The translations under genes were made by a program, and so were the position numbers. Shown here piece by piece: positions 15,878 through 36,300 of a DNA stretch of 64,000 nucleotides. Every line of letters starts with the position of its first letter. Positions within the stretch are counted from its first letter, which is position 1. The notes below the pieces were generated by a model, which was not told the DNA's origin, did no database searches, and worked only from the letters and a program-made list of their open reading frames with translations. The stretch comes from Klebsormidium nitens (Eukaryota; Plantae; Klebsormidiophyceae), in the NCBI GenBank assembly GCA_000708835.1, contig DF237257.1, forward strand, positions 41,885 through 105,884. Reading direction: 5' to 3'.

Positions 15878-16813
15878 ACAGCGTCAGCAGCTTCCAGCTT
15901 GGCGTGTCTCTGACTACAAATCAGGAACTCTCCTGAGCAGGGGACCGCATTTTACAGTAGCATCATAAACGGCTGCACAGTGCAATCTGCTGGCGAGCCT
16001 GCAGGGAGCCCTTGTTACAACTTCAAGCTTTCCAGCTAGCAGGAACTTCGACAAGGGAGCCCTAATATAGGAGTATTTGACAGCTTCCTTTCCCAATCCA
16101 GGCGAGCTGCATGTCATTGTTGTGCTATTTATCTGGCTCTGTGTGTTGGAACAGTAGAGGGCAATTGTCTATCGTACCCTTCTGTTTACCCATGTAGATT
16201 CCGGTGTAACGTACCGAGTTTTGTCGAAAGAATTTGGTTTAACCGGGCTTTCCAGGTTCCCTCATCCCCCCTCATGCTGGCTTGAAAACGCAAACGTGTT
16301 CCACGAATATTCAGAAATGTTCGACATTCGAAAAAGGTTTCATAGCTACGGTCCAACAGCAGAGTCCAATGATCGCCTGCAGGTTCGCCCAGGAGGAATC
16401 ATGGTCCTCGATTCTGAAGGAGACATTGAATGCAGCAGGGCTCCTCATGAACATTGTGACGCTCAATTTCGCAACCTGTATAAGCGTTGGCGCCGCATAC
16501 ATGCTTCTGATGGCTGCAAAAGATGTCTTTACTGAGCCGTTGGCCCAGCTAAAAGGAGAGCTAGCTGGCAAGAGCACGTTGAAAATTAGGGTTTGGGAAA
16601 CATCGAAGTTGCAGATGCTAGTGAGCTTTAGTCGTGAGCATCAGACGTAGCTTAGAAGAACCACCGCTGGCATCAACTCGGAAGGGGCCCGTGAAAGTGA
16701 GAGCATCTGTCTTTCGCATCTAGCAGCATCTCTTGCATAGGCTTAAAGGGATTGCAGCTCCTTTAGCATCTCCCACAGAATACACCCAATCTTTTGCTGA
16801 GAGGGTGTTCAAC
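15878..16813. promoter_or_regulatory. Putative bidirectional promoter and 5' UTR region
   Basis: About 0.94 kb between divergent start codons (15877 on -, 16814 on +). No specific element identified. Confidence 0.4.
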
Positions 16814-19800
16814 ATGGCTGGCAAGCTGAACGACCTGCGGACTCCCAGCTTTGGGAGTCCCAGGCTTGACCCTGCTTTCGAGCTCTCAGCTCAATCAGAG
16901 TTTGTGGACGGGTCCACCCTGTACGACTCGCTGAAGCAGCAGCCTCGAATGCTCTTTAATTCAGACTCTGACAACCAGTCTCGCGGACGCCTATCCTCTT
17001 TTGCTGGTAGCAGAGACAGGCTTCTCTCCAAGGGCCGGGAGTCTACACCACTGGAGGTGTCTTTCCAGAATGATGATGTCATTGGGGTTGCTCACAGACC
17101 AAAGAGGTTTGCTTCCAATCGCACGCCGGAGCTGCACGATACTCAACCGACTCCAACAAGCAATGTGGCAGAGTCAGAGGCGGATATGATCACGCGCCAG
17201 CGGCTGGTTTCACAGAAGTTGCTCGGGAAGAAACCTTCCAAGGGCCCTCCTGGTGTTCAGCAAGAGGCAGGGCAGCTGACTGAGCACCTACTCAGCTCCC
17301 AGTCCCCTCCTCCAAGTAAAGCCAGCTTCAGCAATACGAACTGGCAGGCGGATCAGATACTCATGTCCCAACCAGAGCTGACATCAGCGCCAGCCACTGG
17401 TCCCCAGCCTGCCAGGCAGGAATTCACACCCGTTGGGCCAGGCGCCTTTTCGCACCCCAACCCTCAGCTGCTCCAGAATCTGCTCATGGCTCAGATGCAG
17501 CAACAGCAGTTGCACCCCATCTACTGGCCATACCTGCAGGCGCACCAGTACGCACCTGTACACACTAGTCAATCCAGTACACACCAGTACACGCCTCCTT
17601 TTCCTCCCTGGCCCGCACCTTCCGCCCCAACGCACTTCAATAATGCAACTAGACCGAGTTTCAAAGCTCCCCCCAACCAACCAGAGACTGAGCTAAGGTC
17701 AACAAGCACCACGAAATGGGAGCCCGCCAGCAAAGAAGGCAACTCGGACACAGGAGAGGAAGGCGCGCCGCTAGAGGCCTTGAGCGATCTAGTGGCAAAG
17801 GAGCGGGCAAGTCAGGAGCTCATTGCTGAGCTGAGAAGTGCGTTAGAGGAGGAGAGGCAATCGAAACAGATTGCGGAGAATAAGAACAGGGGCCTGGAGG
17901 AAGCGCTGGCGGGAGCGAGATCTAGGGAGCGGGAGCTAGAAGACCAGGCAAGTCAATGTGGTCAATTTGAAGTTCTTAGCATTGTAGGTTGGCAGTTCTG
18001 TTTGTTTGATTGACATTGCTTCGCTCAATCTTGGGTATCTGAAAATCGAGACAGAAGACAAAACCTGTGAAGCATCGAAACTTGCAGACTGAAGTACCGA
18101 GGCAAGCTGACAGCCTCCCACTTGCGGCTGCGCAAAACTTTGATACGACGTCCCTTTCTCTTGACAGCTCTCTCACGTGAATGTCTGATCATGATCGGAC
18201 ACCCGCTTGCTTTGGAAAAAGTGGACGGGCAACTTAGGAGATCCGCACCACGGTTTCTTGCTACGCTGGTCTTGGCATTTGCTCTCGAACCTCGTGATCA
18301 TCACTTTCGGAGGCTGATGCGTGGGGGCAAAAATGTCTAATCTTGCCAGAGGTCTCTCTGCTATCACCATCGAGTCAAAGTGTGAAACGTGGCAGGTCAA
18401 CTCCTCGTCCTCTGCAGGTCGTCGAAGCTGTAGACCGGGCCCGTCGGTTCGAGGAGGAGGGCCGCCAAGCAAAGCATCGGCTCAAGGAGGCAGAGAAAGA
18501 ACGAGAGGCGGCACGCCGCAAGATGCAGGACGATGCAGAGAAGCTGGTGCGCCTGGAGCGGAAGGACGTGCGGCTGGCTGCAGAGATTGAGGAGATTCAG
18601 GTGAATGCCCCAGAAGTCCTTGGAATGTGAAGTGTGCTTCTCCTCTCGAAATTTCTCGACACGGAGCCAAGACGAGTGAAGCTCGACACTGAAAGGAATG
18701 CGATCTAGTGAACCGCGTCAACAGCTTCAACCAAAAGAATGGCCTTGAACCCCTCAGGAAAATTGGCAAGTTTTACGTCAAACGTGCTTTACAAAGGAAA
18801 CCCTTCGGCAAATGAATCGGTGAACCAAATGGGCTTTCGATTTGGCGCACCCAAGCGACATGCGCGAGCAGACTTGAGTATTGAACCAGCAATTGCTTCC
18901 ACCGTTCTCTCCTCTTCGAGCAGCGTCTGATGCGGCAAAGCTTGTGCTACACAAACGTAAGCCTTTCAACTGTGGACAGATACATCGAAGCAAGATGTGC
19001 TTGAATGAGGACATATGGACGTGAAGCCCACGCAAGAACGCATACCTCGAAAACCCTCAGTCAGTGACATATCTCTTCCTAAGGGAGCACGTCGACGATT
19101 GGTAAGAGACGAGCACGCGAAACGGACCCCCGACGCAGAGGCCTTCTGAAGCTTCAAGCATTCTTTCGGAAAATTGAAACCCTCCAGCCTCTCGATCGAG
19201 TCCACTTCGAAGTTTTAAGGCTTGCTTCCGAAGCCGGGGGCACAAGCCGGGAACTTCTTGAGAAGTAAAGCCTTCATTCTGAAAGAAAATCCTGTAAGTC
19301 GAAACTTATGCTAATCCCTTAATCTCCACCAGGCCCGTGACCAGGCAGAGCTGGAGGCCCTGTTGGAGGAGCGGCGGCGGCTGGATGGCGACCTAACGGA
19401 GCTGCGCAAGCTGCCTGTGGTCACCGAGCTGCTCCGGGAGGACAACGAGGCGCTGCGGGCGCGGCTGCAGCGTGCGGAGAAGGACCGGGCGAATCTGCAG
19501 GAGCTGGTGGGCGGATTCCGGCAGAGCACAGCGGAACTGGAGCAGGCCAGCAAGTAAGGAACGGTTCGGAGAGGGGGCTTTTGGGGCGTCTCGGAACAGT
19601 CGAACCGATTTCTGATTTCTACTTCACCTATGATAGGCGGAAGATGAAGAGGCCTTAGGTAGACCAATCGTATAATCTGGCATATCTAGACAATGCATGT
19701 TCGACTGTTTTTGGGAGACTCTGGACCGTTTGCTGACGGTGCTCCGAAAATTTTGAGATTTCACAGGCCTCGTAAGATCCCTCCCCGCCGGAACTTACTC

Positions 19801-22070
19801 TCGGCGGCCTGTTATGCAGGCGCGCCAACGGCGAAAACGAGGCCCTGCGCAAGGAGTGCAACATGCTGAAGCTGCAGATCGCCTCCAAGGACACTTCAAT
19901 CTCGCAATTACAAGTGGCGCTCTTCGCTGGTCGGGAAGAGCGAACCGACTTGTACCACAATCTTCGGAAACTAGAGGAGGCGGCGCACGCGATGGAGGGG
20001 TCCGCGGCCCCGAGCCGACGCGGCAGCTTCGGCCTCAAAAGCTACAACCCTCAGGGGGAGTCTTTGTCAGCTGCCAGGCGATTGGAAGCGTCGTTTGATA
20101 GCCTATCGTTCGGTCCAGACTCGTTTGACAAGGTTGGACTGGAAACGGGGAGCGAGACACAGGGTGGACCAGCTGATATGGGCAGGTTAGGAGGAGAAAG
20201 CAGCTCAATGGCCGCGCCTGAACCGGTTCCGTTGATCTCCAAGACGGAACGGAATGCGAACCCGAAGCACCGGGAAAATGGGCCGGGCCCAGAGACCCTG
20301 CCCCCAGCTGGTGTGTTTTCCCCGGTTGGTAGAAACCGGGCGCAGCAACTAGCGGGGGATGATATGCGCCGCAGCCTCACGATGGACCAGGAAACTGACC
20401 GGGGCGCCGTGAGTGGATCCCGGCAGGCTGAGCGGATTCCGGCGGGAAGCGAGCGGAGTCCGGCGGCAAGCGGGAAGGTGCCAACGTCAAACGAGAGAGC
20501 GGGGCCTGCGAACGCAAGAACAGCATCGCCCAGCGAGCGGAATGCGCTGGGAGGTGAACGGAATGGCGGAAGAGCGGACGGCCCCGACTTCGGTAGAGGT
20601 GTGTCCGGCTCGGAGATGAGGACAATGGACAGGCGCCACGTGGCAGAGCCTCCGGAGAGCAGCCGCGGACAGGCCCCCACTGTCCGGAAAGAAAGTCCGG
20701 ACCGTTTCGCCACTCAGTCACGTGACCGCCCGAACAGCCCACAACGGACAGTGACTCCGCCACGATCGGCCACAGCGGAACGGATCGTAGCCAGCGGAGC
20801 GGATCGCCGACACGGCCCGGTTGATTCACCCGAGAGCGAAGTTCTTTCTAGCCAACCTAGCCTGGGGAGTGCGAGGGATCCCCCTCGGGCGCGCGAAGTT
20901 GTGCCGTTCGCGACTGAGCAGTCGTTGCGGGAGGCGATGGAAGAGACGGCGGCGATAGAGAGCAAGCTGATGGAGGTGTCACTCGAACGGAGTCAGGTAC
21001 TGGTCTCATATCGCAACCGACCCCTTCATCGGAACGGGTGTGAGTTCTGGATAGTTAGTGTGTTTCGAGTCCTTTGAAGCAGCCCTATGGAAGGTAATGC
21101 CCGGTTCACATGCGTTCTCAACTTCGCTGGTTTTGAGAAACACGTGGGCAAATTAGGCGTTCTTTTCCCTTTGCAAAACTCCTCGTCCGGTTCCCACAAT
21201 TAGGCAGTTTTAGAATTTAGTCGAGTTCCAGCAAGATTCGGTTTGCGATACTCGGCAAACACCGACATCGGTTTTGCTCGGTTTTCAAAAGTGGTGTTCA
21301 TATGCGTCCGAATCTCTGGGAGCTGCCACGTCGGACAAAAACGGCCTCACCATGCCAAAACGGACGTACGCGAACCGGGCATGAGACGGTCGTTGCAGAA
21401 CGAGACAAAGTATAATCGTTAGATTCGTGACTTTCTTGTTGGTTTACAGTATTCACAAACGTCATTCTTGGACCCAAAAGCTTGCGACACGTGGCAACTT
21501 ATCGACTTTGGGCTTCGTCTTCCAACTTACTGTACTCCTTTTTATCGATTCAAAACTGATAACGCGGCCCTCTTTTCTTTAGAAAGACTTGGAATCTGGT
21601 TTGCTCGAAGGATAGGTACGGGGACTAAACAAAAGAGTTGCGGGCCGTCATGTAGAGGGCTTCTTCCCATGTTGGCGGTCGAACGGCATCGACTAGCATG
21701 GAGCTTTGTTGAGCGAGTCCTACTCGCAAAGAAGCTCAGTCGATTGATTTGTCAAGTAGTGTCTCACCTCCTGTCCGAGGACCTACCAACGTCAATACGT
21801 CCTTTCTTTCACAGTCGAAGGCATCTCTGAGCAGCCTTTTGAATCTCAAAAGAACGAAACCTCAAACCGACAGAGCGTGGCTGCTCGTTAAAGGCAGCGG
21901 TCTGCGATTTGCAGCTGGAGTCCGAGTATGCCAAGCTGCCCCAGTCCGCCGGCCGCACCATGACGGAACGGCGGCGGAAGCAGGAGTTGGAGGGGCGGAT
22001 CGAGGACCTGACCAAGAAGATCGGCTGGCTTCGGATGGAGCTTCGGGAGCGCCACGTGTTGCACAACTGA
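16814..22070 (+). CDS. Coiled-coil protein with MPHOSPH9 (MPP9)-like C-terminal motif
   Basis: In-phase exons 16814-17947 (GC donor CAG|GCAAGT), 18418-18600, 19333-19553, 19820-20996, 21915-22070. Gln/Pro-rich N-terminus, E/K/R-rich heptads, Ser/Arg/Pro-rich disordered region. C-terminus EETAAIESKLMEVSLERSQLESEYAKLPQSAGRTMTERRRKQELEGRIEDLTKKIGWLRMELRERHVL*. Start codon uncertain; family assignment is from recall of the MPP9 C-terminus. Confidence 0.75.
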
Positions 22071-23546: not shown

Positions 23547-26500
23547 TTATGACGAGTTTGCGTCGTGCAACCGGAGGACGACGGCGCTCATGGACGGGCG
23601 CTCCTCCCCTTGCAGCGATATGCACTGGTACGCAAGCGCCGCAATCTTGAGCACGGAGGCGCGCGTCATGGAGCCCTGGATGCGGGGGTCCACGATTGCA
23701 AGGGTGCGGTCGGGATCCCGCAAGTGCGGCCGGGCCTGCGCAAAACAAATGGACACGGTTTAGGATCGGATTGTCAGGCTTTGATCAGGCGTGGAGAGAT
23801 ACTACGAGCTGAGAGGCTTTACTTTCACGGACTGATTAGCCACTTGAATTTTTTTAAAAAAGGGCCTGCACAAGATTCACGTAAACTGCGCATCTCCTAA
23901 AGAGGCAACGCAAATACTTTGCTGCGGTCTGGAACCGCATCCATGTGCGGAGAGGGGTACAGACGATCCAAAAAGGGAAAAAGAAGAGCTGGACTCACCC
24001 ATTTGGCGAGGCTGCCGTCAGCGGAAGGAAGCGTCTGGTCGATGGGCTTCTTCCCGGTCAGCATCTCCAGCAACACCACTCCAAAAGCGTAAACGTCGGA
24101 CTTTTCAGTCAACCGCTGACCCTCGTAGTACTCGGGGTCAAAGTAACCTGCGGAGCAACAAAAGCAGGCTTAAAGGCTGATCGATGCTCAAAGGAAATCG
24201 CTTGGAAGTCCCTGCAATGCCCTTCCTGGACACTTCATTGATGGACCGGCTCTGGTGCGTCCAAAGTGGGCTTCGCGAGTGCCTCCAAATCCCCCGTAAG
24301 GACCACAAACAATTTCGCACCTACTTCGTCTGCCAATGTTGATATGCAAAACAACTTCAACTGCGGCGATCACGAAAGAGTAACGGAACAGCCTCTGTTC
24401 GTACAGCTCGCAAAGCTCTGCCAGCATATACTCCAAACATTCCACGCTCGAACGACGCACCTGGCGTCCCCCGCACGAAAGTTGACGACGCGGGCTGCGA
24501 CGCATTAGTGAGCGCGGCCTTTGAGAGCCCGAAGTCGGCCACCTTGGCGTTCCAGTCCTCGTCGAGCAGGATGTTGGAGCTCTTGATGTCCCTGCAACCA
24601 CGTTCATTGCCAATAAGTTTCCGCCCCTGTTGCAGCTCATTGAATGTGGCCTGACCTCAAGTCCAGAGGTGATCAGCGAAACGGAGCCTCGAAGCCGAGA
24701 GTCGAGAAGTCTTCCAGTAAAGTCAAGGCAAGTTGGCAGAATTTACCAAGACTTTTTATCTGCGAAGTTGCAGCCTTGTCTCTTCTCGCCCTAGATCTCA
24801 GTCTGGAGTTCACGTATATTTCAAACGAAGCTTGGCTTTAGGGTTTCCTGGTTTTAGGAGGAAGTAGAATAGTAGCGCACCTGTGGATGACAGGTGGCGT
24901 TGCGATGACGTGGAGGTGGTCCAGGCCCTTGGCAGCACCGATGGCAACCTCCAGGCGCATCCGCCACGAGAGGGGCTTGTGGGGGCCTGGCGGTCAGGGA
25001 ACAACAGGTAGGGTTTGTTAAGCAAAAAAGTGAAGGTTTTCAAAAACGAGGAACCCGCACGTAACGAAGACAAGAGACGGAGAATCACGCCTTGAAAGCG
25101 GAGAACGCGAATACCTGGTTGTACAAAGCGAAGGCAGAAAGAAGCAAGCCTCGCGCCCGCATCTGGGGTTCAAGAGGCTTACCAGAAGGCGTGAAGCAAC
25201 GCAGCGAGTCCAAGAACAGGCCTCAAACTATCTCAAAGACACTCTTTAACATGCTGCGCGCATATCGTAGTCAGCTGTTATCAAAAACAGACACGACCAG
25301 AAATCTACTTTGGCCGGCTTACCGCGGAGGTGCTGCGCGAGGTTCCCGTTGGGCATGTACTCGTAGCACAGCAGCTGCTCCTCATCCGTCGCGCAGAAGC
25401 CGATGAGGCGAACTAGGTTGGGGTGCTTCAGCCGGCCCAGGAGCCGCACCTCGTTGATGAACTCGCGCATGCCCTGCTTGGACTCCTTCTTCATGCGCTT
25501 CACTGCGATGAGCGAACCGTCGTCGAGAAGACCTTTGTAGACCTTGCCGAACCCGCCGCCGCCGAGGGCGCCCTGCGGATGGAAAGGCCAGGAAAGATGA
25601 GGACGTGATATAACACGCTTACGGTGAAACGATCGAGATGCCTAAACTCTAAAACTTTAGAAGCTCAGAGCTTTGCTCCGAGAACTCTGATCGGTTCTTT
25701 TCTAAGAATCAGCACATTCGTTGGAAGCAGAGAAAAAGACAAACGTCAGCAAACGAGACGGGAAGCGACTACAACCGAATCTGACTTTGATAGATTACTA
25801 CAACCGAGCCTGAGTTGTCCACATTGGCATCGACTTACATGCAAGCGACTTCCTATTGCTCGTACTTCGGGACTTAGATCTATCAGAACTGTCTCTTCTC
25901 GTCTCAACTGGCCTGGGATTTCGCAAAGATTTTGAATGGACAGGTGTGTGCTCACGTTCTCGTTGAAGTAGTCGGTGGCCACCAGGATCTCGCGCAGTGT
26001 GAAGCTGCGGCTCGTGACTGTCTCTCCGGCAAACGGCATCGCCGAACCGACCGTCGATGTACTGCAAACCAAGCAAAATCCGAATCGTGGGCACGAGAAA
26101 GGATCGCCAAAACTGAACGAGACTAGCGGCTTGAGAAGCAAATACACAGAGCCACTCCCTTTTGATCGGAACCGAAGTCGCTGCTAGAGCTTAGCAGTCC
26201 AGAGCGAATCGCGGACATTGCACCTCGCGCCAACAACCACTGATACTGCGACTTGCAGACAATCAAAGCAATTTGATTGGTAACATTAATCAACCAAACT
26301 CCCTTCCCATCCTCTCGGAATAGCTCCAAAATGATGATCCTTACGAAGAAACGGTCTTGCCCCCGTGAGTCCCGGTCAGACCCCCGCTCGTCTGTGCGCG
26401 GTCGTGGCTGGTCGAGCGGTCGGAACTCGCCGTCTTGTCGGCGTAGTGCAGCTCTCCGCTGGATCGTTCGGACGAGCGCGAGCTCATGCCGGACTCTTTG

Positions 26501-29500
26501 GACGCGCGAACGTGTCCGACGTTGGACGTGCCCTCGGGCATGCTGATCACGACCGACTGGGGGGGGGACTTGGAGGAGTGGATGGAGGGGGGGGCTGCGC
26601 AGGAGAAGTCACGAATTTACTTTTAAGGGAAAGGGCCGTTCAAGTGAACATTGTGGTGTTCCAAATAGGTCGACAGAGATGCAAACGAAGAGAAAGCCGT
26701 TTGGGAAGATGAACTCGATCAAAGGTCATGCGACTAGCATGTCTGGGTTGAGCCACTTCCAATACGCTTGCAGCAAGAGCAACTCGAAAGGAGAAGAAAG
26801 CCAAATCGACCGCTTGATAATGGAGGCAGGAGTGTCTCGAAAGTGGTACCAAATTGGCCCCTCTTGCCGTCCTTCCTCTTTGGCACAGGCCGTTCGAAAC
26901 CCCGAAGCGGAAGGGTCTGTCGAATCGCAAGAACTCAATAGCAAACGCCTCCACCTGTCTTTCCCAACAACTTCGAAGAAAGCAAGTCGAACACAGTTTT
27001 GTACTTTCCGCTGCTGCCGACTCACCTGCCGTTGGCAGAACCTCCTGGTTCGGGTTCCAGTCGAACCACTTCCTCGCAAGCGCCGTGTGATCCTTTGGCT
27101 TCGCACTCTTGGACCGTCGCCAGAGGCAAAAAGCAGCACACGCGGCAACAAAGAGGAGCGCCACGACGCAGAGAACGACGACAATGATGATGATAGTGGT
27201 CTTGTTGCTGTCGCTGCTGGGGGACCCGACGGGCGCTGCAAAATGAGAAATTGTCTGGTTCGGAAGCTGTGGGATTGGCGTGGTGGGCATGAGTGCTGCT
27301 TACAGAGTTGTCCTATCTCTGTGCTTCAGGATAGACACCAATCAGAGGGACTCTTCAACCAAAGAAGGACGTTGCAAGCAAACAGAAGGCGGGAAGTAGC
27401 AACGCTCGAAATAAGAGGTAGAGGGATAGCAACGGGACAAAAAGGGAAGGGTGGAACAATTTCGCACCACAGCTTTCCTAGGAACAATAGGTATGCGCAC
27501 ATGTCATTGTCACTGGAGTTCAAAGGCACTTACCAGGAGGCGTGTTCTGCCTCAGCAAAAGGCTCTGCGAGACTTGGCCTTGGCCAACTAGCTGCGTGGG
27601 GAAAACATGACCAAAGGTCAGTACTCGGGCAAATGCTGGGCACTTCTACGCTTGACAAGTGGATTGGGCCCACTTTCTGATGGGCCTCAGAAGGTCTTCA
27701 GACAAAGCTCAGGGCTGTTTGAAGGTGCTGCAGACCGTTTGTGAACGAGGCAAGCGATGCCTGACAGACGAGAGCAGCATCCAATCAGGCCTTCAGAGAT
27801 ATCAATTGGTGGCCAGAGTTCATTTCCGAGTCGAATGCCTGACAGCTATGCCTGATACCCATAAGCAGAGTGGGCGTGCGAGTGTTGCACTGGTAAATTC
27901 TGCGAAACGCTTGCCATGCCCCTCACCTGTCCCCTAGCCGCCCCGCTGGCGTAATCGTTCGTCAGCAGGTTAACGTAGCGGTTACCACCCGGGTTAAGAA
28001 TCTGGTAAATCACTTCTACATTGGGCACGACAACACAGCCCCCCGTGGGGAACTTGGGCTGGCCGCCGGAACTAAAAGTAACTAGAGTGGGCCCGTTTTG
28101 GCCGGCACTTCCGGAGTTGATGGTAAGGCCTGCTGGGGGGCTCTGTAGGCCAGAAGTGGAAAGTCTCCAGAAGCAAACGGTATTGGTGCCGAGCACGTTG
28201 ATCATGACCTGGCCGTTGCCTGCAAGAAGAGAGATTGGCGTTTCGATCAGACGTGGATCAAGATAAGCTGCAAGTGGTTAAGCCTGAGTTAGGCGGGTTT
28301 GCAGAACGTAGGCCCTGGGTTGCTAATAAGGGCTCAATGGGGGCAGCAAAAAGGGCTTTCTCAATCAAGGTGGTTGTATGGCACAGTTGACAGAACAGAA
28401 TGATCACAGGCTGTAGTGTAGTTCTCGCTGTGTCTGAGATACAAAACTTCAGTGGTGACCTAAGATATGCATCTAAACCTGAATGCGGCACAGTCTTATC
28501 AACGTTTGAAGTAACTATTGTATATCAAGTTCCATGCCCCTGTGCCGTACCTAAAAATATCCGACGGCAGACTTTCGCGGCAAAGGACAGCACCATCCTA
28601 GGCCTGGAAGAGAACCAGATAAATCACATACTGCCACATACACTCAATCTAGATACACACAGAAGAGCTGTCGCATCTAGCTGCCCTTCATGCATAAGAT
28701 AGATTGACCACTCACCGAAACAACTAGCAAGGCCCACACAAACAATGCGTTCGAAACACTCACCATCCCCAGCAATCGTCGGCACCTCCTCGGTACCTTG
28801 CAGTCCCACACGCGCCACCGCTGTGTTCAACTGATTGCGCACCAATCCATAGTTTACATTGTTCAAGTCGTGAATGTTGATGTAATACTCGCTCATGTTC
28901 CCCAGAATCCCTTGGACCGCTTTCGAATCTACAGCGGTGCATGCCGGCTGCGTCGGGTCGTTCGTAATCGGAAAGAAAACCGTCACGGGCCCCACTTGCG
29001 TGGCCTCCCCAAAGTGAAGGTGCGCGCCCGACAGAATGTACCCATCCGGCGTTTGCAGGTTCAGGTCTGAGAGGCATACTGCGTCGTCAGCAAAGGTTAT
29101 GATCGCGGAACCGTTGGCGGGGGTGTTGATAGCCGGAAGCTCGTTTGCGCTGTCCAGCATGACCTTGGCAACTAGAGTGGGGAGCTGGCCCCTCAGAATG
29201 CCAGCGTCCGGATAGTCTTCATTGTACACTGTAATGTAAAAGTTTGCGGGGTCGGCTAGGATCGACCTGAACACTGAGGGCGCCACCTGAACCGAGCCGC
29301 TAACGGGGAGCAAGGACGACACGCCGAAGTCTACAACCACCCTTGCGGATGCCGTGTTTGCTGCGCCGGCGAATAGGCGGATCCCCGTGATTGGCTGAGT
29401 GATGGAGTCATCGAGCTGGAGCTTGTCAAAGAAGATAGGGAGGGGGGAGGTGCTGGTCAGGGGGTCCACATTCTCTGGGAAACTGAGGTGGATGCTGCCT

Positions 29501-30407
29501 TGCGCAAGGGGGGTGCCGCTCAGTGGGGGGGTCACCTTGGCGCTGTTCAGATACACAGTCATGTTCACATTGGCAGAGGCCCCTGTGACAGAAAACGTAC
29601 AACATGAGTTTTGTGACATTTGCAGAGGCACCTGAGTAAGGAAAAGAGCATGTTGAAAGCTTATAGTGTCCTCTTGCGAGGTATCAAATGCACTGATTCT
29701 CAAGACAAGCAGACTCAGCCCATGCATTCGAGCAAGACGTCCAGAAGGTAAAGAGCTAGCTGGTACCCAGAATGTTCTTTCTAGGCATGAAACAGATTTC
29801 TTGGAGCTTGAAAACAAGAAACGGAAATCTGCCAGCTTGCAACCGAGTTAATCACCAACAGCTACCAGAAGGGGCACTTTTCGAACGTCAGCCAGGGCAT
29901 TGAGCTAGCAGTAGGTATCCGAAGCCCAAGGTCCAAACCAAGAGATATTGACCATCCCAACGGAGTAGTTTTAACTTTGAGCAAAGTTCTACGGTTTTCC
30001 ACGGGCTTGACTAAAGCCCGTGGCCTTCTTTGTGAAAGAAACCTTAAAGAATGTTTCCCCCAGTTCTTGGCAAGATTGAGTCCCAACATTCCCAGTCATA
30101 CCGTAACTAGAATTGTACACTTGTGCGGAGAAAGGAGAATTGCAGTTGCAATAAGCTTTGTTTCTGTGTATCACCAAATTGCAAAGTTTGCAACTTTGTA
30201 CACTCTGGCTTGTGTGAGAATAAGCCACGACCAATATGGCTGCAGACGGCGCTTCCACTGTTCATAAAAGAACCGACAAACAATAAGTTGGGACGTGCCA
30301 GATTGAATTGTGGACCCAGCATCATCCAACTATGGCTCACTAGGCAGTCGAGCAGACTTCTTACCTGACATGAGAAGTGCAAACACAATGACAAGCAAAG
30401 CTTTCAT
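23547..30407 (-). CDS. Receptor-like kinase (RLK/Pelle, RD type) with three extracellular CHRD domains, ~867 aa
   Basis: 12 in-phase exons: 30407-30365, 29582-28764, 28219-27927, 27591-27534, 27235-27026, 26594-26345, 26061-25956, 25572-25323, 24986-24881, 24591-24461, 24147-23999, 23735-23547. Signal peptide [18 protein letters not shown]; three repeats ending ILRGQL, LVRNQL, AARGQL; [27 protein letters not shown]; kinase [64 protein letters not shown]. Confidence 0.9.
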
Positions 30408-31207
30408 CGTCCATTCTTGCTGCAAACTATCCCGCCAAGCACTGGCGACCCGATGCCCCATTTTTTTGGCAACACAACTGCAGGCCCTTGATAAAACCTA
30501 GAAACAAGGATGTTGGCTTCCGCACAACTTCCTGATTGCACTGGCAGATCACCAAATATGTGTATCTCTCAGCTCGCTTCTGTATACTCAGTTGACTGTA
30601 CTGTTGATCGCTGTGACCTTGAAAGCAACTGGAACCTGCAGGTTGTCCCTCTTTTTCTTCAAAAACGTCCAAGGGCAGTGTCAGGTATTGTCTGTAATGG
30701 GTAACCCTTGACAGGACCCTCGCACGCCCGTCGACAAGTCGGTCACTCCTAAGCGCTCTGCACAATTCTGCTTCTCTTCCAAAAGCTCAAATGAGCGGCT
30801 CGTCACACAAGCCTGAGAACAAAGGAGAAGCTTTGTCCTGTACATGTGCAGCTTGCTTAAAGTTCGAGACGGATGGCCTCTTCCCACAGGAGGAGGCTTG
30901 CTCAACGAAGTCTTGAACAGCCCCAATTTGCATGGCGCTCAATCTGGCCAAGTGCATGACGACTCTGACTGTCACATGGGGATGTACACACAAGGCGCAA
31001 ATCAAGGAGCACTTCCTGCCAGAACGAAGATTTCGCGAAAGATACACGTTCATTTACTGGTCCCGAAAGTAGCGTGCGCTCTTACTGCCGTCGGATGGAG
31101 GGTTTGAAAGCGAACCAGCCGTCAGATGGAGAGTTTCACAAAGGAAATCTGAAATGGGGCTCCTAAATTCGTCACGACCAGGCCGCCAGAGGAATGAGTA
31201 CCACTCC

Positions 31208-33358: not shown

Positions 33359-36300
33359 CTATCTGACTTCAACAGAAACGCCGTTGCCAACAGCGTTTTG
33401 TCCACTGCCCTCTGTTGTCGAAGAGGGGTAAACGAAAATCTTTGCGTTGCCTTGCGTTGGATTTAACTTCGCGCCGTGCCGAACAGTACTGAACTTTATC
33501 TGAGGGAGCGTCAAGAGCCCCGCCTGGATCGGAACGAGCTCGTACAAAAGCGCTTTCACCGAACGGGGCAGGACAATCATCTGGCCGTTGTGACTCCCGC
33601 CGAGAACGAAGCTGGGGGAGTCCGTCACACTAAAAGCAACCTCTTGCAGCAGTTCCGTCGCATTGGTTATCCTCACCGCGACGCTGAACGGCTTCCCCAG
33701 AGTTGCGCAGGCGGGCAATTCCGTTTCCACGAGGACGTGCGAGCCCTCAACGGACACCGGAGCAAGCGGAAGAACGGACACTACTGGGGCGGGGTGGGTG
33801 TCCCACGTGCCAGCTGGCACTTCCACGTGCCTCTGCCACGTCACCTCGAGCACGCCCAACGAGACCGACTCCCCCGGTTGCAAAGGACGCACTCGGAAGA
33901 GCTTCGAAAACGCCTCGCCGGGCCCCAGATCCCGAACCCCGTTCTCTTTGCCCTCCGCAGAATCCGCTAGGAGGTCCGCCTGGCTAGATTGCCCCGCGGT
34001 TCCAACTTCTTCCGCCAGGTTTTGTTCCATCCGCAGCGCCAGTCCGCTGACTCGGACCGGAACGGACGAGCTGCTCCGGACGGAAACGGAGAGCAGCACT
34101 TCCTCGTTGAGGGGCAGCTTTGCGGACGCTGTCGAGGGGGAGGGGAGAAGCGCATCCTTCCGGAACGGGGCGAACCAGCGGTGCGACACGGAGAGGGGTT
34201 CTTCCCCACGCATTGGCACGACCTTTCGCACCTGCGTCGTCGATTTGGAATGCTTTAGGACTTCAGAATGTTGGGGATTTACCCTAAAGTTAGACCTCGG
34301 TCTTACTCCCATGCGGGCCAGTTGGCGAGCACGCAAAAAAGTCTGCTAGACCGAGTTGAGGGTCGGCTGCTTTTTAAGTCAAGTCCTCCGGGTCCAAGTT
34401 CTGTGCTGAGTAAACATTGCCAGTGGTTTCTTGTCTGCATTGCGGGTAGGCAAGAAGTCGCAGGTCGCGTCGGAGCCACAGTTAGCAGCAGATGCCAGAA
34501 AGTCGCTTTCTCAGGGACATTGCTGGAGGGCACTGGACCGTTGCAGATCTAACTGGCATTTCTGGCACCCACTCGATTTTCCTTGCATTGGTCCAGAAAA
34601 GCTGTAAACGCGACCATGAGGCAAGCACCGGGGCCTTCTCTGTTCGGATCCATTTCATTGTGAAATGGCGCCCCCTCGTATCATACCGTGGGTTCATACC
34701 GAAGAACCCGCTAGGTAGTTTGTTGACCACCTTCCAGACCATTTCAAGTTCTCGAGGCAGCCGGTTGCTACATAAGCAATGACAGAGTAGAAGCAGGATC
34801 CCTCACCTTCGACTTTCGGGGGGCCCCGCCGCCCTTCTCCGCCTCATAGCTTACGGTCACCGCAAGCCCCGCATCCGCCGCCTGTGCCCACCGCAGAAAC
34901 ACCACTGCAGCCCACTCCCCGCCCGCATCGATCTCCGGGACCGCCAGCTGTCCCGAGAACTTCTCGTACGCGCCACTCCCGCTCGACTCCGCCGTTTCCG
35001 TTCCGCTCGTCGCCATATCCGCTGCACCTGCGGCCGTGACGTCAGCCGATTCCCGTTCCGCCCCTTCGGAGCCCTTGTTCACCAGAAGCTCCGCCGGAAG
35101 CACCTCAACGACGGGGACTTCGGACCCCAGATCGACGAGCGAAGCGTCCGAAACTGCGGCGGGGGGTTTGGGCGCCAGGCTCTCCGGCTCCAAACTCAGC
35201 TTGCCGCCCGACACTTTATCCCCCCGGGACGAAACCAAAATCCGCACCGGCAAAACCTCTCCCACTAACCCGGGTTCTCCGCCAAACTCCACCTGCACGT
35301 CGACGTCGGCCGGCGCCTCTCCGACCTCCAAAACGTGCAAACCTCCGAGCGGAATCACCGGTTTCGGGGATCCCTCGCCTCGGGGCTCGTACATCCAGAA
35401 GGGCACTAGTATCTCGCCACCGACTAGGGACTCGACCTGGCACCGTAACCGCGAGTTAGCGCCGAGGGTTAGGATGACCGCCTGGCACTCAAGGCGCCCA
35501 CTCGTCTTGGGTGTTACGTCTACTGAGAGCTTCCGCCACTCTAGAGAATTCAGCGTCAGCTCTTCTGGACTCCGCACGCTCTCTTTAGTGGGCGCTGCTG
35601 ACGTGTCGTCCATCAGGTTGACCACGGGCTGGGATGACGTGAGGGTGACGTTGCACGCCGGGTCACTGAAAACCACTTCAATCGAAGTTGGGCTCAATGC
35701 GGACGGAAGTCGAGACAAGAGGGCGACTGTCAGCTTCGTCGGCGTTCCGGGCTGCGCACTTCTCTGCTCAAAAAGCGCAGTACACGAGAGGACGGTTCGT
35801 AACGGAGACGCGTCGGCGAACGAGAGCAGCACGGGAGCGGCGGGATCAATAGCTAACGCCTCCGCCGGCTTCTTTTCCGCCTCCTCTTCCTCCACGCCCG
35901 AATCAATCCGATCTAGTTTGAGCCCGCTCCCCGCCAGGATCGCCATCGCCTCCCCTTGCGCGTGCTTCCGGAGCTCGATCCCCTTGCCCCCGTCCCAGCT
36001 TGTGCTTTCGTAACCGTTGCCGCCACCATTACCGCCGTTCAGGGGAAGAGACGCAAGCTCGAGCGAGTACTCGACGAACGCCTGGACGAGCCCCCCTTGG
36101 CGGGTGCACTCGCGAAGCCGCTCGAGCGTGGCGGCCAAAAGAAGCGCCCACGACTCCTTGCGGTAGACGGCCGCGACACTGTCATAGAGGCGGCGCGCAT
36201 TGGAGAGGTCGTTGGCGTGCAGATACTCATCGGCCATCTCGCCCCCAAGCTGAAGAGAAAACGGGTTTCAGAGGTTCAGCGTTTAAGCAGAGACCGGGTT

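Follow-up and report, generated by a model that had tools for sequence, protein, structure and literature searches.

RLK/Pelle receptor-like kinases (RLKs) serve as the principal cell-surface sensors in land plants, and in those of the RD type ligand-driven oligomerisation is followed by activation-loop phosphorylation. The listed classes of RLK ectodomains comprise LRR, LysM, malectin, lectins, S-domain, WAK, DUF26, PERK/extensin and others, and CHRD is absent from the class lists of the reviews and surveys that we searched, as an initial annotation of the DNA described here had held. Chordin is an extracellular, soluble antagonist of bone morphogenetic proteins (BMPs) that carries four tandem superoxide dismutase (SOD)-like CHRD modules and four VWC domains, with neither a membrane anchor nor a kinase; to our knowledge, the BMP pathway is absent from plants. 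A 2026 structure paper called the chordin CHRD fold SOD-like and reported that the four CHRDs pack into one globular assembly (crystal structures 9IGM, 9RD6 and 9QVV) and that the CHRD region binds heparan sulfate through clusters of Arg, Lys and His located between CHRD1 and CHRD4 (PMC13382577). Secreted CHRD proteins of microbes and algae, among them P0007 of Klebsormidium subtile, KAJ1457926.1 of Pelagophyceae, Cre12.g533100 of Chlamydomonas, FonCHRD of Fusarium and bacterial multi-CHRD proteins, consist of a signal peptide followed by one to many CHRD modules with an H-x-H, Y-x-N-x-H and R-x-Q signature. Here we describe a gene at 23547..30407 on the minus strand of a 64-kb window of the alga Klebsormidium nitens (the whole stretch of 64,000 nucleotides that was analysed, from contig DF237257.1), and we hold with considerable confidence that it encodes an expressed, selectively maintained single-pass RLK/Pelle receptor kinase with three tandem CHRD modules homologous to the central region of chordin.

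The gene model was assembled from reverse-strand open segments between GT and AG sites. It comprises 12 exons with a coding sequence of 2604 nt for 867 amino acids, running from the ATG at 30407..30405 to the TAA at 23549..23547, both on the minus strand, and the frame runs unbroken and without an internal stop across introns that are all GT-AG (11/11), in agreement with the intact gene claimed initially. For transcript evidence, contigs from four public runs of four studies were compared with window positions 24430-30425 (5996 letters); the labelling of these runs as RNA is a guess, and their intron-less joints indicate a spliced-RNA origin. Each run yielded one spliced contig of 2.5-2.7 kb that skips exactly the predicted introns at the joints from exon 1 to exon 10, and the skipped introns show CT..AC ends on the plus strand, equal to GT..AG on the strand of the gene. 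At the joint of exons 10 and 11, a loose contig end at 24459 continues into exon 11, while the joint of exons 11 and 12, which lies outside the compared stretch, is based on the model of GT-AG introns together with exons that the orthologs conserve. Because single spliced contigs carry exons 1-10 in four studies, with one contig reaching from exon 1 to the HRD-encoding exons, ectodomain and kinase are encoded on one mRNA. An alternative acceptor for exon 5 at 27295, giving a protein of 887 amino acids, was rejected since the RNA joints place the acceptor at 27235, which is 60 nt downstream and drops 20 residues in frame.

The layout of the encoded protein, with all features on the minus strand, bears out the architecture proposed by the initial annotation, namely a signal peptide, three CHRD modules, a Ser/Pro stalk, a transmembrane helix and an RD kinase with all catalytic motifs. 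Exon 1 (30365..30407, with an RNA joint at 30365/29582) supplies the start codon and the greater part of the signal peptide (residues 1-17, a hydrophobic N-terminus). Exon 2 (28764..29582; two CHRD stretches in Pfam at 7.2e-14) holds the signal peptide end, CHRD1 (residues 17-149, 29179..29577), CHRD2 (residues 148-267, 28825..29184) and the first strand of CHRD3 (residues 266-386), a module split by intron 2 whose body lies in exon 3 (27927..28219; RNA joints, Pfam match at 2e-8, 57-72% identical in orthologs). A mini-exon of 58 nt, exon 4 (27534..27591, both joints in RNA of four runs), contributes the last CHRD3 residue and the start of the Ser/Pro-rich stalk of 30 amino acids (residues 387-416). 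The stalk is continued in exon 5 (27026..27235; acceptor from RNA, 52-69% identical in orthologs), which also encodes the transmembrane helix (residues 417-440, 27200..27129), assigned by hydropathy, and the basic stop-transfer sequence WRRSK next to it. The 19-residue mean Kyte-Doolittle hydropathy of the helix reaches up to 3.57, and hydropathy peaks are limited to residues 2-22 and 413-445, giving the receptor topology of a signal peptide and one transmembrane helix. A juxtamembrane region with 29% Ser+Thr (residues 441-585) follows, and its Ser/Thr-rich exon 6 (26345..26594; RNA joints, 40-68% identical in orthologs) had no match to a Pfam family. The kinase domain (residues 586-860, 23571..25979, matched by Pfam PK_Tyr_Ser-Thr/Pkinase) is encoded by exons 7 (25956..26061), 8 (25323..25572), 9 (24881..24986), 10 (24461..24591), 11 (23999..24147) and 12 (23547..23735). 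The ectodomain is acidic (pI 4.6, with 16 K+R versus 27 D+E) and possesses four N-x-S/T sites and four Cys residues, one conserved pair each in CHRD2 (184 and 229) and CHRD3 (303 and 349), CHRD1 being free of Cys.

Three side features of the transcript were seen. Contigs of low depth (2-4.5, versus 24-122 for the spliced form) lie inside introns at 26713-26955, 27288-27550 and 25056-25308, and seem to represent unspliced pre-mRNA or small amounts of genomic DNA in these runs. Immediately upstream of the acceptor of exon 2, at 29585-29640 near the end of intron 1, there is a near-copy of the exon 2 start (gtgcctctgcaaatgtcac versus gggcctctgccaatgtgaac) preceded by another AG; RNA uses the downstream acceptor only, and the near-copy would seem to be a short duplication from which a decoy acceptor arose. 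Finally, an out-of-frame upstream ATG, read by hand from the sequence, is positioned at 30412..30414 on the minus strand, 7 nt before the start codon and in a strong context (A at -3, G at +4), and lies in the mRNA, the RNA contigs extending to at least 30425. It opens an overlapping reading frame of about 70 codons after splicing that runs on into exon 2 (also hand-read), and may reflect translational control or leaky scanning.

Assignment of the ectodomain to the CHRD family came from several searches. In Pfam scans, CHRD2 and CHRD3 matched PF07452 at 3.6e-9 (37.9 bits) and 2e-8 (35.5 bits), respectively, both above the gathering score of 24.1 bits. CHRD1 gave no Pfam match at E up to 1 when scanned alone but added a second PF07452 stretch when exon 2 was scanned whole, and an iterated CHRD profile recognised all three modules, recovering CHRD1 at full length (independent E-value 3.9e-13 against the 269 sequences of a local set). 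Furthermore, a profile of 71 relatives matched the human chordin CHRD crystal chains 9igm, 9qvv and 9rd6 over two modules at E 1e-20; a single-sequence search of the PDB with exon 2 returned nothing relevant, so that chordin was reached with the profile only. The initial annotation had named a significant match to a CHRD hidden Markov model as its own test, and the two PF07452 scores together with the profile match to the chordin structures provide it. Invariant columns in the 71 CHRD segments are H-x-H, Y-x-N-x-H and R-x-Q, and only CHRD2 has the full signature (H202/H204 in GAHLH, Y248/N250/H252 in YYINIH and R263/Q265, with VRNQL kept). At the corresponding positions, H-x-H reads GIRLFAG in CHRD1 and GLTINSG in CHRD3, and Y-x-N-x-H reads FYITVYN and RYVNLL, respectively; both modules retain the Tyr and R-x-Q and have lost the His residues. 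In all orthologs (see below), the CHRD2 signature is kept without exception, while the signature positions of CHRD1 vary among them (R/H/Q; F/H; Y/H) and the signature is absent in CHRD3. The ectodomain thus consists of three tandem CHRD modules, one canonical and two degenerate. The count of three given initially stands, on Pfam, iterated profile and fold, with the qualification that CHRD1 and CHRD3 are degenerate and that CHRD1 lacks a Pfam match of its own; the sequence hallmarks cited for it are all present, with LQGTEEVP opening CHRD3, YYINIH in CHRD2 and RGQL closing CHRD1 and CHRD3.

The fold of the first two modules was examined in an AlphaFold2 model covering exon 2 (CHRD1 and CHRD2), obtained with a predicted local distance difference test score (pLDDT) of 88.5 and a predicted TM-score (pTM) of 0.83. 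Two beta-sandwiches are seen in the model, alike in strand order and with one helix, in agreement with the SOD-like fold reported for chordin (PMC13382577). Fold comparison matched CHRD1 (model residues 5-135) to Cu,Zn-SOD with a Z score of 9.3 and CHRD2 with 8.3, at a root mean square deviation of about 3 A over 103-112 residues. The top 15 rows of this comparison were all SOD, CCS or SOD-like (Z 6.6-9.3), the closest structural matches to both modules being Cu,Zn SOD, Cu-only SOD5 and CCS domain 2, and the best Foldseek match of the exon 2 model was a SOD1 tandem with a probability of 0.97. In the model of CHRD2, H-x-H sits on strand 4 and a single His on strand 7, strands which we take to correspond to those bearing the copper ligands of SOD1. 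By contrast, likeness at the sequence level was slight: the window sequence had no Pfam match to Sod_Cu (PF00080), which places the ectodomain outside the SOD family by sequence, weak Sod_Cu matches appeared in 2 of the 71 CHRD segments, and an hhalign comparison between the CHRD profile and E. coli SodC paired 'TaaHIH' with 'GFHIH' at a non-significant probability of 0.7%. The CHRD modules also lack the zinc loop and the electrostatic loop signature of Cu,Zn SOD, with which they have only the fold in common. The CHRD ectodomain does not belong to the SOD family, and catalytic activity should not be read into it.

Set beside its described relatives, the Klebsormidium receptor shares with chordin/Sog the homologous CHRD family and the extracellular tandem of SOD-like modules, but differs in having three modules rather than four, in the H-x-H..H signature that CHRD2 keeps and chordin CHRDs lack, and in the charge of its ectodomain, since chordin binds heparan sulfate via basic patches whereas the acidic Klebsormidium ectodomain is without such patches. 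VWC domains had no Pfam match on any exon, and the protein, being membrane-anchored and fused to a kinase, falls outside the Chordin/Sog group. Compared with the secreted CHRD proteins, two of its three modules are without the signature.

All catalytic motifs of the kinase were located, namely GGGGFGKV at 597, K618, E630, HRD at 711 (HRDIKSSN), DFG at 731, GYFDPE at 756 (GYFDPEY) and RPSM at 851, and judged by these motifs it is predicted to be a catalytically competent kinase of the RD type. For its placement, exon 8 and a piece made of exons 9+10 were searched against all PDB chains, the latter taken from the related metagenome contig L001, where it is uninterrupted and its protein is 100% identical. 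The closest matches (E 1e-22 to 1e-15) were plant RLKs and receptor-like cytoplasmic kinases, followed by IRAK4; Pto, BAK1, a lectin RLK (LecRK), BIK1, BRI1, SymRK, FERONIA and CERK1 all ranked above IRAK4. Plant RLK/Pelle receptors (Pto, BAK1, BRI1, SymRK, FERONIA and CERK1, which the kinase pieces match at E 1e-19 to 1e-22) have the type-I topology in common with the Klebsormidium protein, from which they differ by their ectodomains. The end of the activation segment, GYFDPEY, presumably resembles that of the CrRLK1L, SymRK and WAK groups. These matches suggest that the kinase fits the RLK/Pelle pattern, and the initial call of an RD-type RLK/Pelle kinase with all catalytic motifs agrees with both the motif positions and the ranking of PDB chains.

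To see how far the architecture is conserved, relatives were gathered by an exhaustive search with exon 2 over 1.84 billion representatives, which gave 674 matches, the best 150 of which were listed. Only one close relative was found among the matches listed (P0001, 66% identical, a prokaryote-style gene call on a 43.5-kb metagenome contig), and a word search with exon 2 added P0261 (78% identical). Orthologs were then traced by exact look-ups of fragments of open reading frames, yielding four contigs (L001-L004) from samples JGI 3300060284, JGI 3300060285 and ENA ERZ26165376; two metagenome pattern scans, with exon 2 and with the ortholog alignment, gave no confirmed locus. In L001-L004, the CHRD1-2, CHRD3, transmembrane and juxtamembrane segments and all kinase exons are colinear on one strand with no stops in the coding matches, and exon 2 is 66-78% identical; the flank downstream of the window gene is syntenic with L001. 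Measured against L001, where dS is >= 1, the ectodomain has a ratio of nonsynonymous to synonymous substitution rates (dN/dS) of 0.19 and the kinase one of 0.04. Conservation within the ectodomain is highest in the first ~30 residues of CHRD1, about 28 of which are invariant by inspection across four orthologs, versus 65-79% for whole modules. In a domain tree of 186 single CHRD modules, the first, second and third modules each grouped with their L002 and L001 counterparts (SH-aLRT 99-100), indicating that the three-module order predates the split of these lineages. Taken together, at least three related lineages keep the architecture under purifying selection.

The exon structure of the orthologs differs from that of the window at one point. 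The intron at 24592-24880, which separates exons 9 and 10 and splits the HRD codons, is absent from all four related contigs, and the two exons are fused at L001:10645-10884, L002:6353-6622 and L003:16559-16798; this represents either a gain in the lineage of the window or a loss in the others.

The next relatives, among the matches listed, were multi-CHRD secreted proteins with 27-39% identity over the matched stretches, including pelagophyte proteins (such as KAJ1457926.1), and the secreted 4xCHRD protein P0007 of K. subtile was the best named relative of the ectodomain. A kinase, whether or not preceded by a transmembrane helix, was found in 0 of the 260 nearest CHRD proteins fetched among the matches listed. 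Likewise, no full-length protein of the CHRD receptor kinase occurred in the protein collections, among the matches listed in searches with exon 2 and with an 816-aa CHRD alignment, the latter being a word search framed at 816 aa for which proteins of 449-1428 aa were eligible and the best 120 were listed. The CHRD receptor kinase is thus found only in one narrow lineage, made up of the K. nitens genome and three related metagenome lineages, and exon shuffling probably brought in its ectodomain from the secreted multi-CHRD proteins of the alga itself. Within the reach of these searches, this is the first case, in any organism, of a CHRD module joined to a kinase. Searches of the ESM Atlas by features and by shape returned bacterial CHRD clusters only. 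In one of these, a cluster of 628 members, 19% of the members also contain PF18092 (DraK_HK_N), the domain with which a Streptomyces histidine kinase senses outside the cell, a hint that bacteria may already use CHRD-like modules as sensor domains of kinases.

Several readings of the locus other than a functional and undescribed receptor were considered. If the model had merged two neighbours, a secreted CHRD protein and a separate kinase, or had joined a bacterial CHRD contaminant to an algal kinase, then ectodomain and kinase should belong to separate transcripts; prokaryote-style gene calls on the related contigs do list CHRD and kinase exons as separate small proteins, and the lack of a full-length protein among the matches listed would fit as well. 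However, the one spliced contig per run that joins exons 1-10 in four studies refutes the two-gene reading and upholds the single gene annotated initially, a spliceosomal intron splits CHRD3 itself while the frame is continuous across 11 GT-AG introns, and the colinear arrangement is kept in four other contigs, making this reading hardly credible. A recent accident of domain shuffling, transcribed without function and now decaying or neutral, would explain why CHRD1 and CHRD3 lost their His signature and why an out-of-frame ATG precedes the start codon. By contrast, such a chimera would not be expected to keep an intact frame of 867 codons with all catalytic motifs, a dN/dS of 0.19 in the ectodomain and 0.04 in the kinase at saturated dS, and a three-module order older than the split of three lineages, and we regard it as very improbable. 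There is some chance, albeit a small one, that the architecture has already been catalogued as 'other or unknown ectodomain' among the 91-94 RLKs that published surveys count in K. nitens/flaccidum, the supplementary tables of the surveys Dievart 2020 and Gong and Han 2021 lying outside the literature search. Yet a 350-genome receptor survey covering K. nitens among others mentions neither CHRD nor PF07452 in its supplements, and no searchable text holds both CHRD and RLK.

As for how the receptor would work, a ligand outside the cell would, by analogy with other RD-type RLKs, drive homo- or hetero-oligomerisation and then activation-loop phosphorylation, and signalling would proceed from the phosphorylated Ser-rich juxtamembrane region and the kinase. 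We reasoned that the ligand site would be the His-lined pocket conserved in CHRD2, since this is the only module in which selection keeps the family signature, and that CHRD1 and CHRD3 would serve as a scaffold or bind partners. Our first guess at the ligand chemistry, put forward tentatively, is binding that depends on a metal, or else the sensing of metal or redox state. The narrower idea that the CHRD2 His triad, inherited from a SOD-type ancestor, directly senses extracellular Cu/Zn or redox species such as superoxide appears quite improbable; if true, it would amount to a SOD-derived metal/redox sensor wired to a plant-type kinase and would bear on early streptophyte surface perception of oxidative or metal stress. 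By analogy with chordin and extracellular SOD, the ectodomain might instead recognise a wall or extracellular-matrix carbohydrate polymer and act as a wall-integrity sensor, which we find rather doubtful. The sole measured activity of a CHRD is glycosaminoglycan binding (PMC13382577), and many bacterial CHRD proteins are fused to Big_7, TIG, PKD or SpaA surface/adhesin modules; against this, polyanion binding is unlikely because the ectodomain is acidic; neutral glycans might still be bound. It is also conceivable, though unlikely, that the ligand is a protein or peptide, for example a secreted multi-CHRD protein of the alga through a CHRD-CHRD contact, with the N-terminal face of CHRD1 as the interface. 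The near-invariance of that face across four orthologs, the existence of secreted 4xCHRD proteins in Klebsormidium (P0007) and the single globular assembly formed by the four chordin CHRDs (PMC13382577) are consistent with such a contact, but retention of the family signature in CHRD2 only points to the CHRD2 pocket.

Some points weigh against the receptor and ligand-site readings that we prefer. The sole experimentally assigned CHRD function, heparan-sulfate binding, is of a different mode, and chordin is without the His residues (PMC13382577). A match of the modelled His triad to the SOD copper site would depend on strand order and on an hhalign pairing that is not significant (0.7%). The RLK/Pelle placement is a ranking drawn from PDB matches of 80-aa pieces, and the tree of 186 CHRD modules does not resolve the donor of the ectodomain. 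In addition, Pfam, fold and database searches were run exon by exon.

Around the gene, the upstream neighbour on the minus strand (33362-36237) has long open segments that match Foie-gras_1, Gryzun-like and TRAPPC13_C domains, and is probably a TRAPPC11-type trafficking gene. Two plus-strand open segments at 16733-18010 (426 aa) and 19863-21074 (404 aa) matched no Pfam family at E 0.001. A tblastn search with the protein detected no paralog of the CHRD receptor kinase within the 64-kb window.

With regard to novelty, the searchable literature of 8.4 million texts, outside which the tables of Dievart 2020 and of Gong and Han 2021 lie, holds no link of CHRD or PF07452 with plant or algal receptor-like kinases, Klebsormidium or streptophytes, and CHRD is unmentioned in a Chlorophyta RLK survey and in a 500-genome RLK preprint. 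Within that scope, the suggestion of an undescribed type of receptor holds. The term 'algal receptor class' was generous: a CHRD-transmembrane-kinase receptor is real and not in the literature searched, but it is confined to one narrow lineage. What the locus encodes is a lineage-restricted CHRD ectodomain variant of RLK/Pelle receptors that is real, expressed and conserved. Given this restriction, the finding is an example of domain shuffling and not of a pathway conserved in plants. The ectodomains tried out in algal relatives are nevertheless central to how plant RLK/Pelle signalling arose, and CHRD adds an ectodomain type in one of the earliest-branching streptophytes with true receptor-configured RLKs. 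The receptor also gives CHRD a read-out, and the ligand of the Klebsormidium ectodomain would inform thousands of orphan microbial CHRD proteins.

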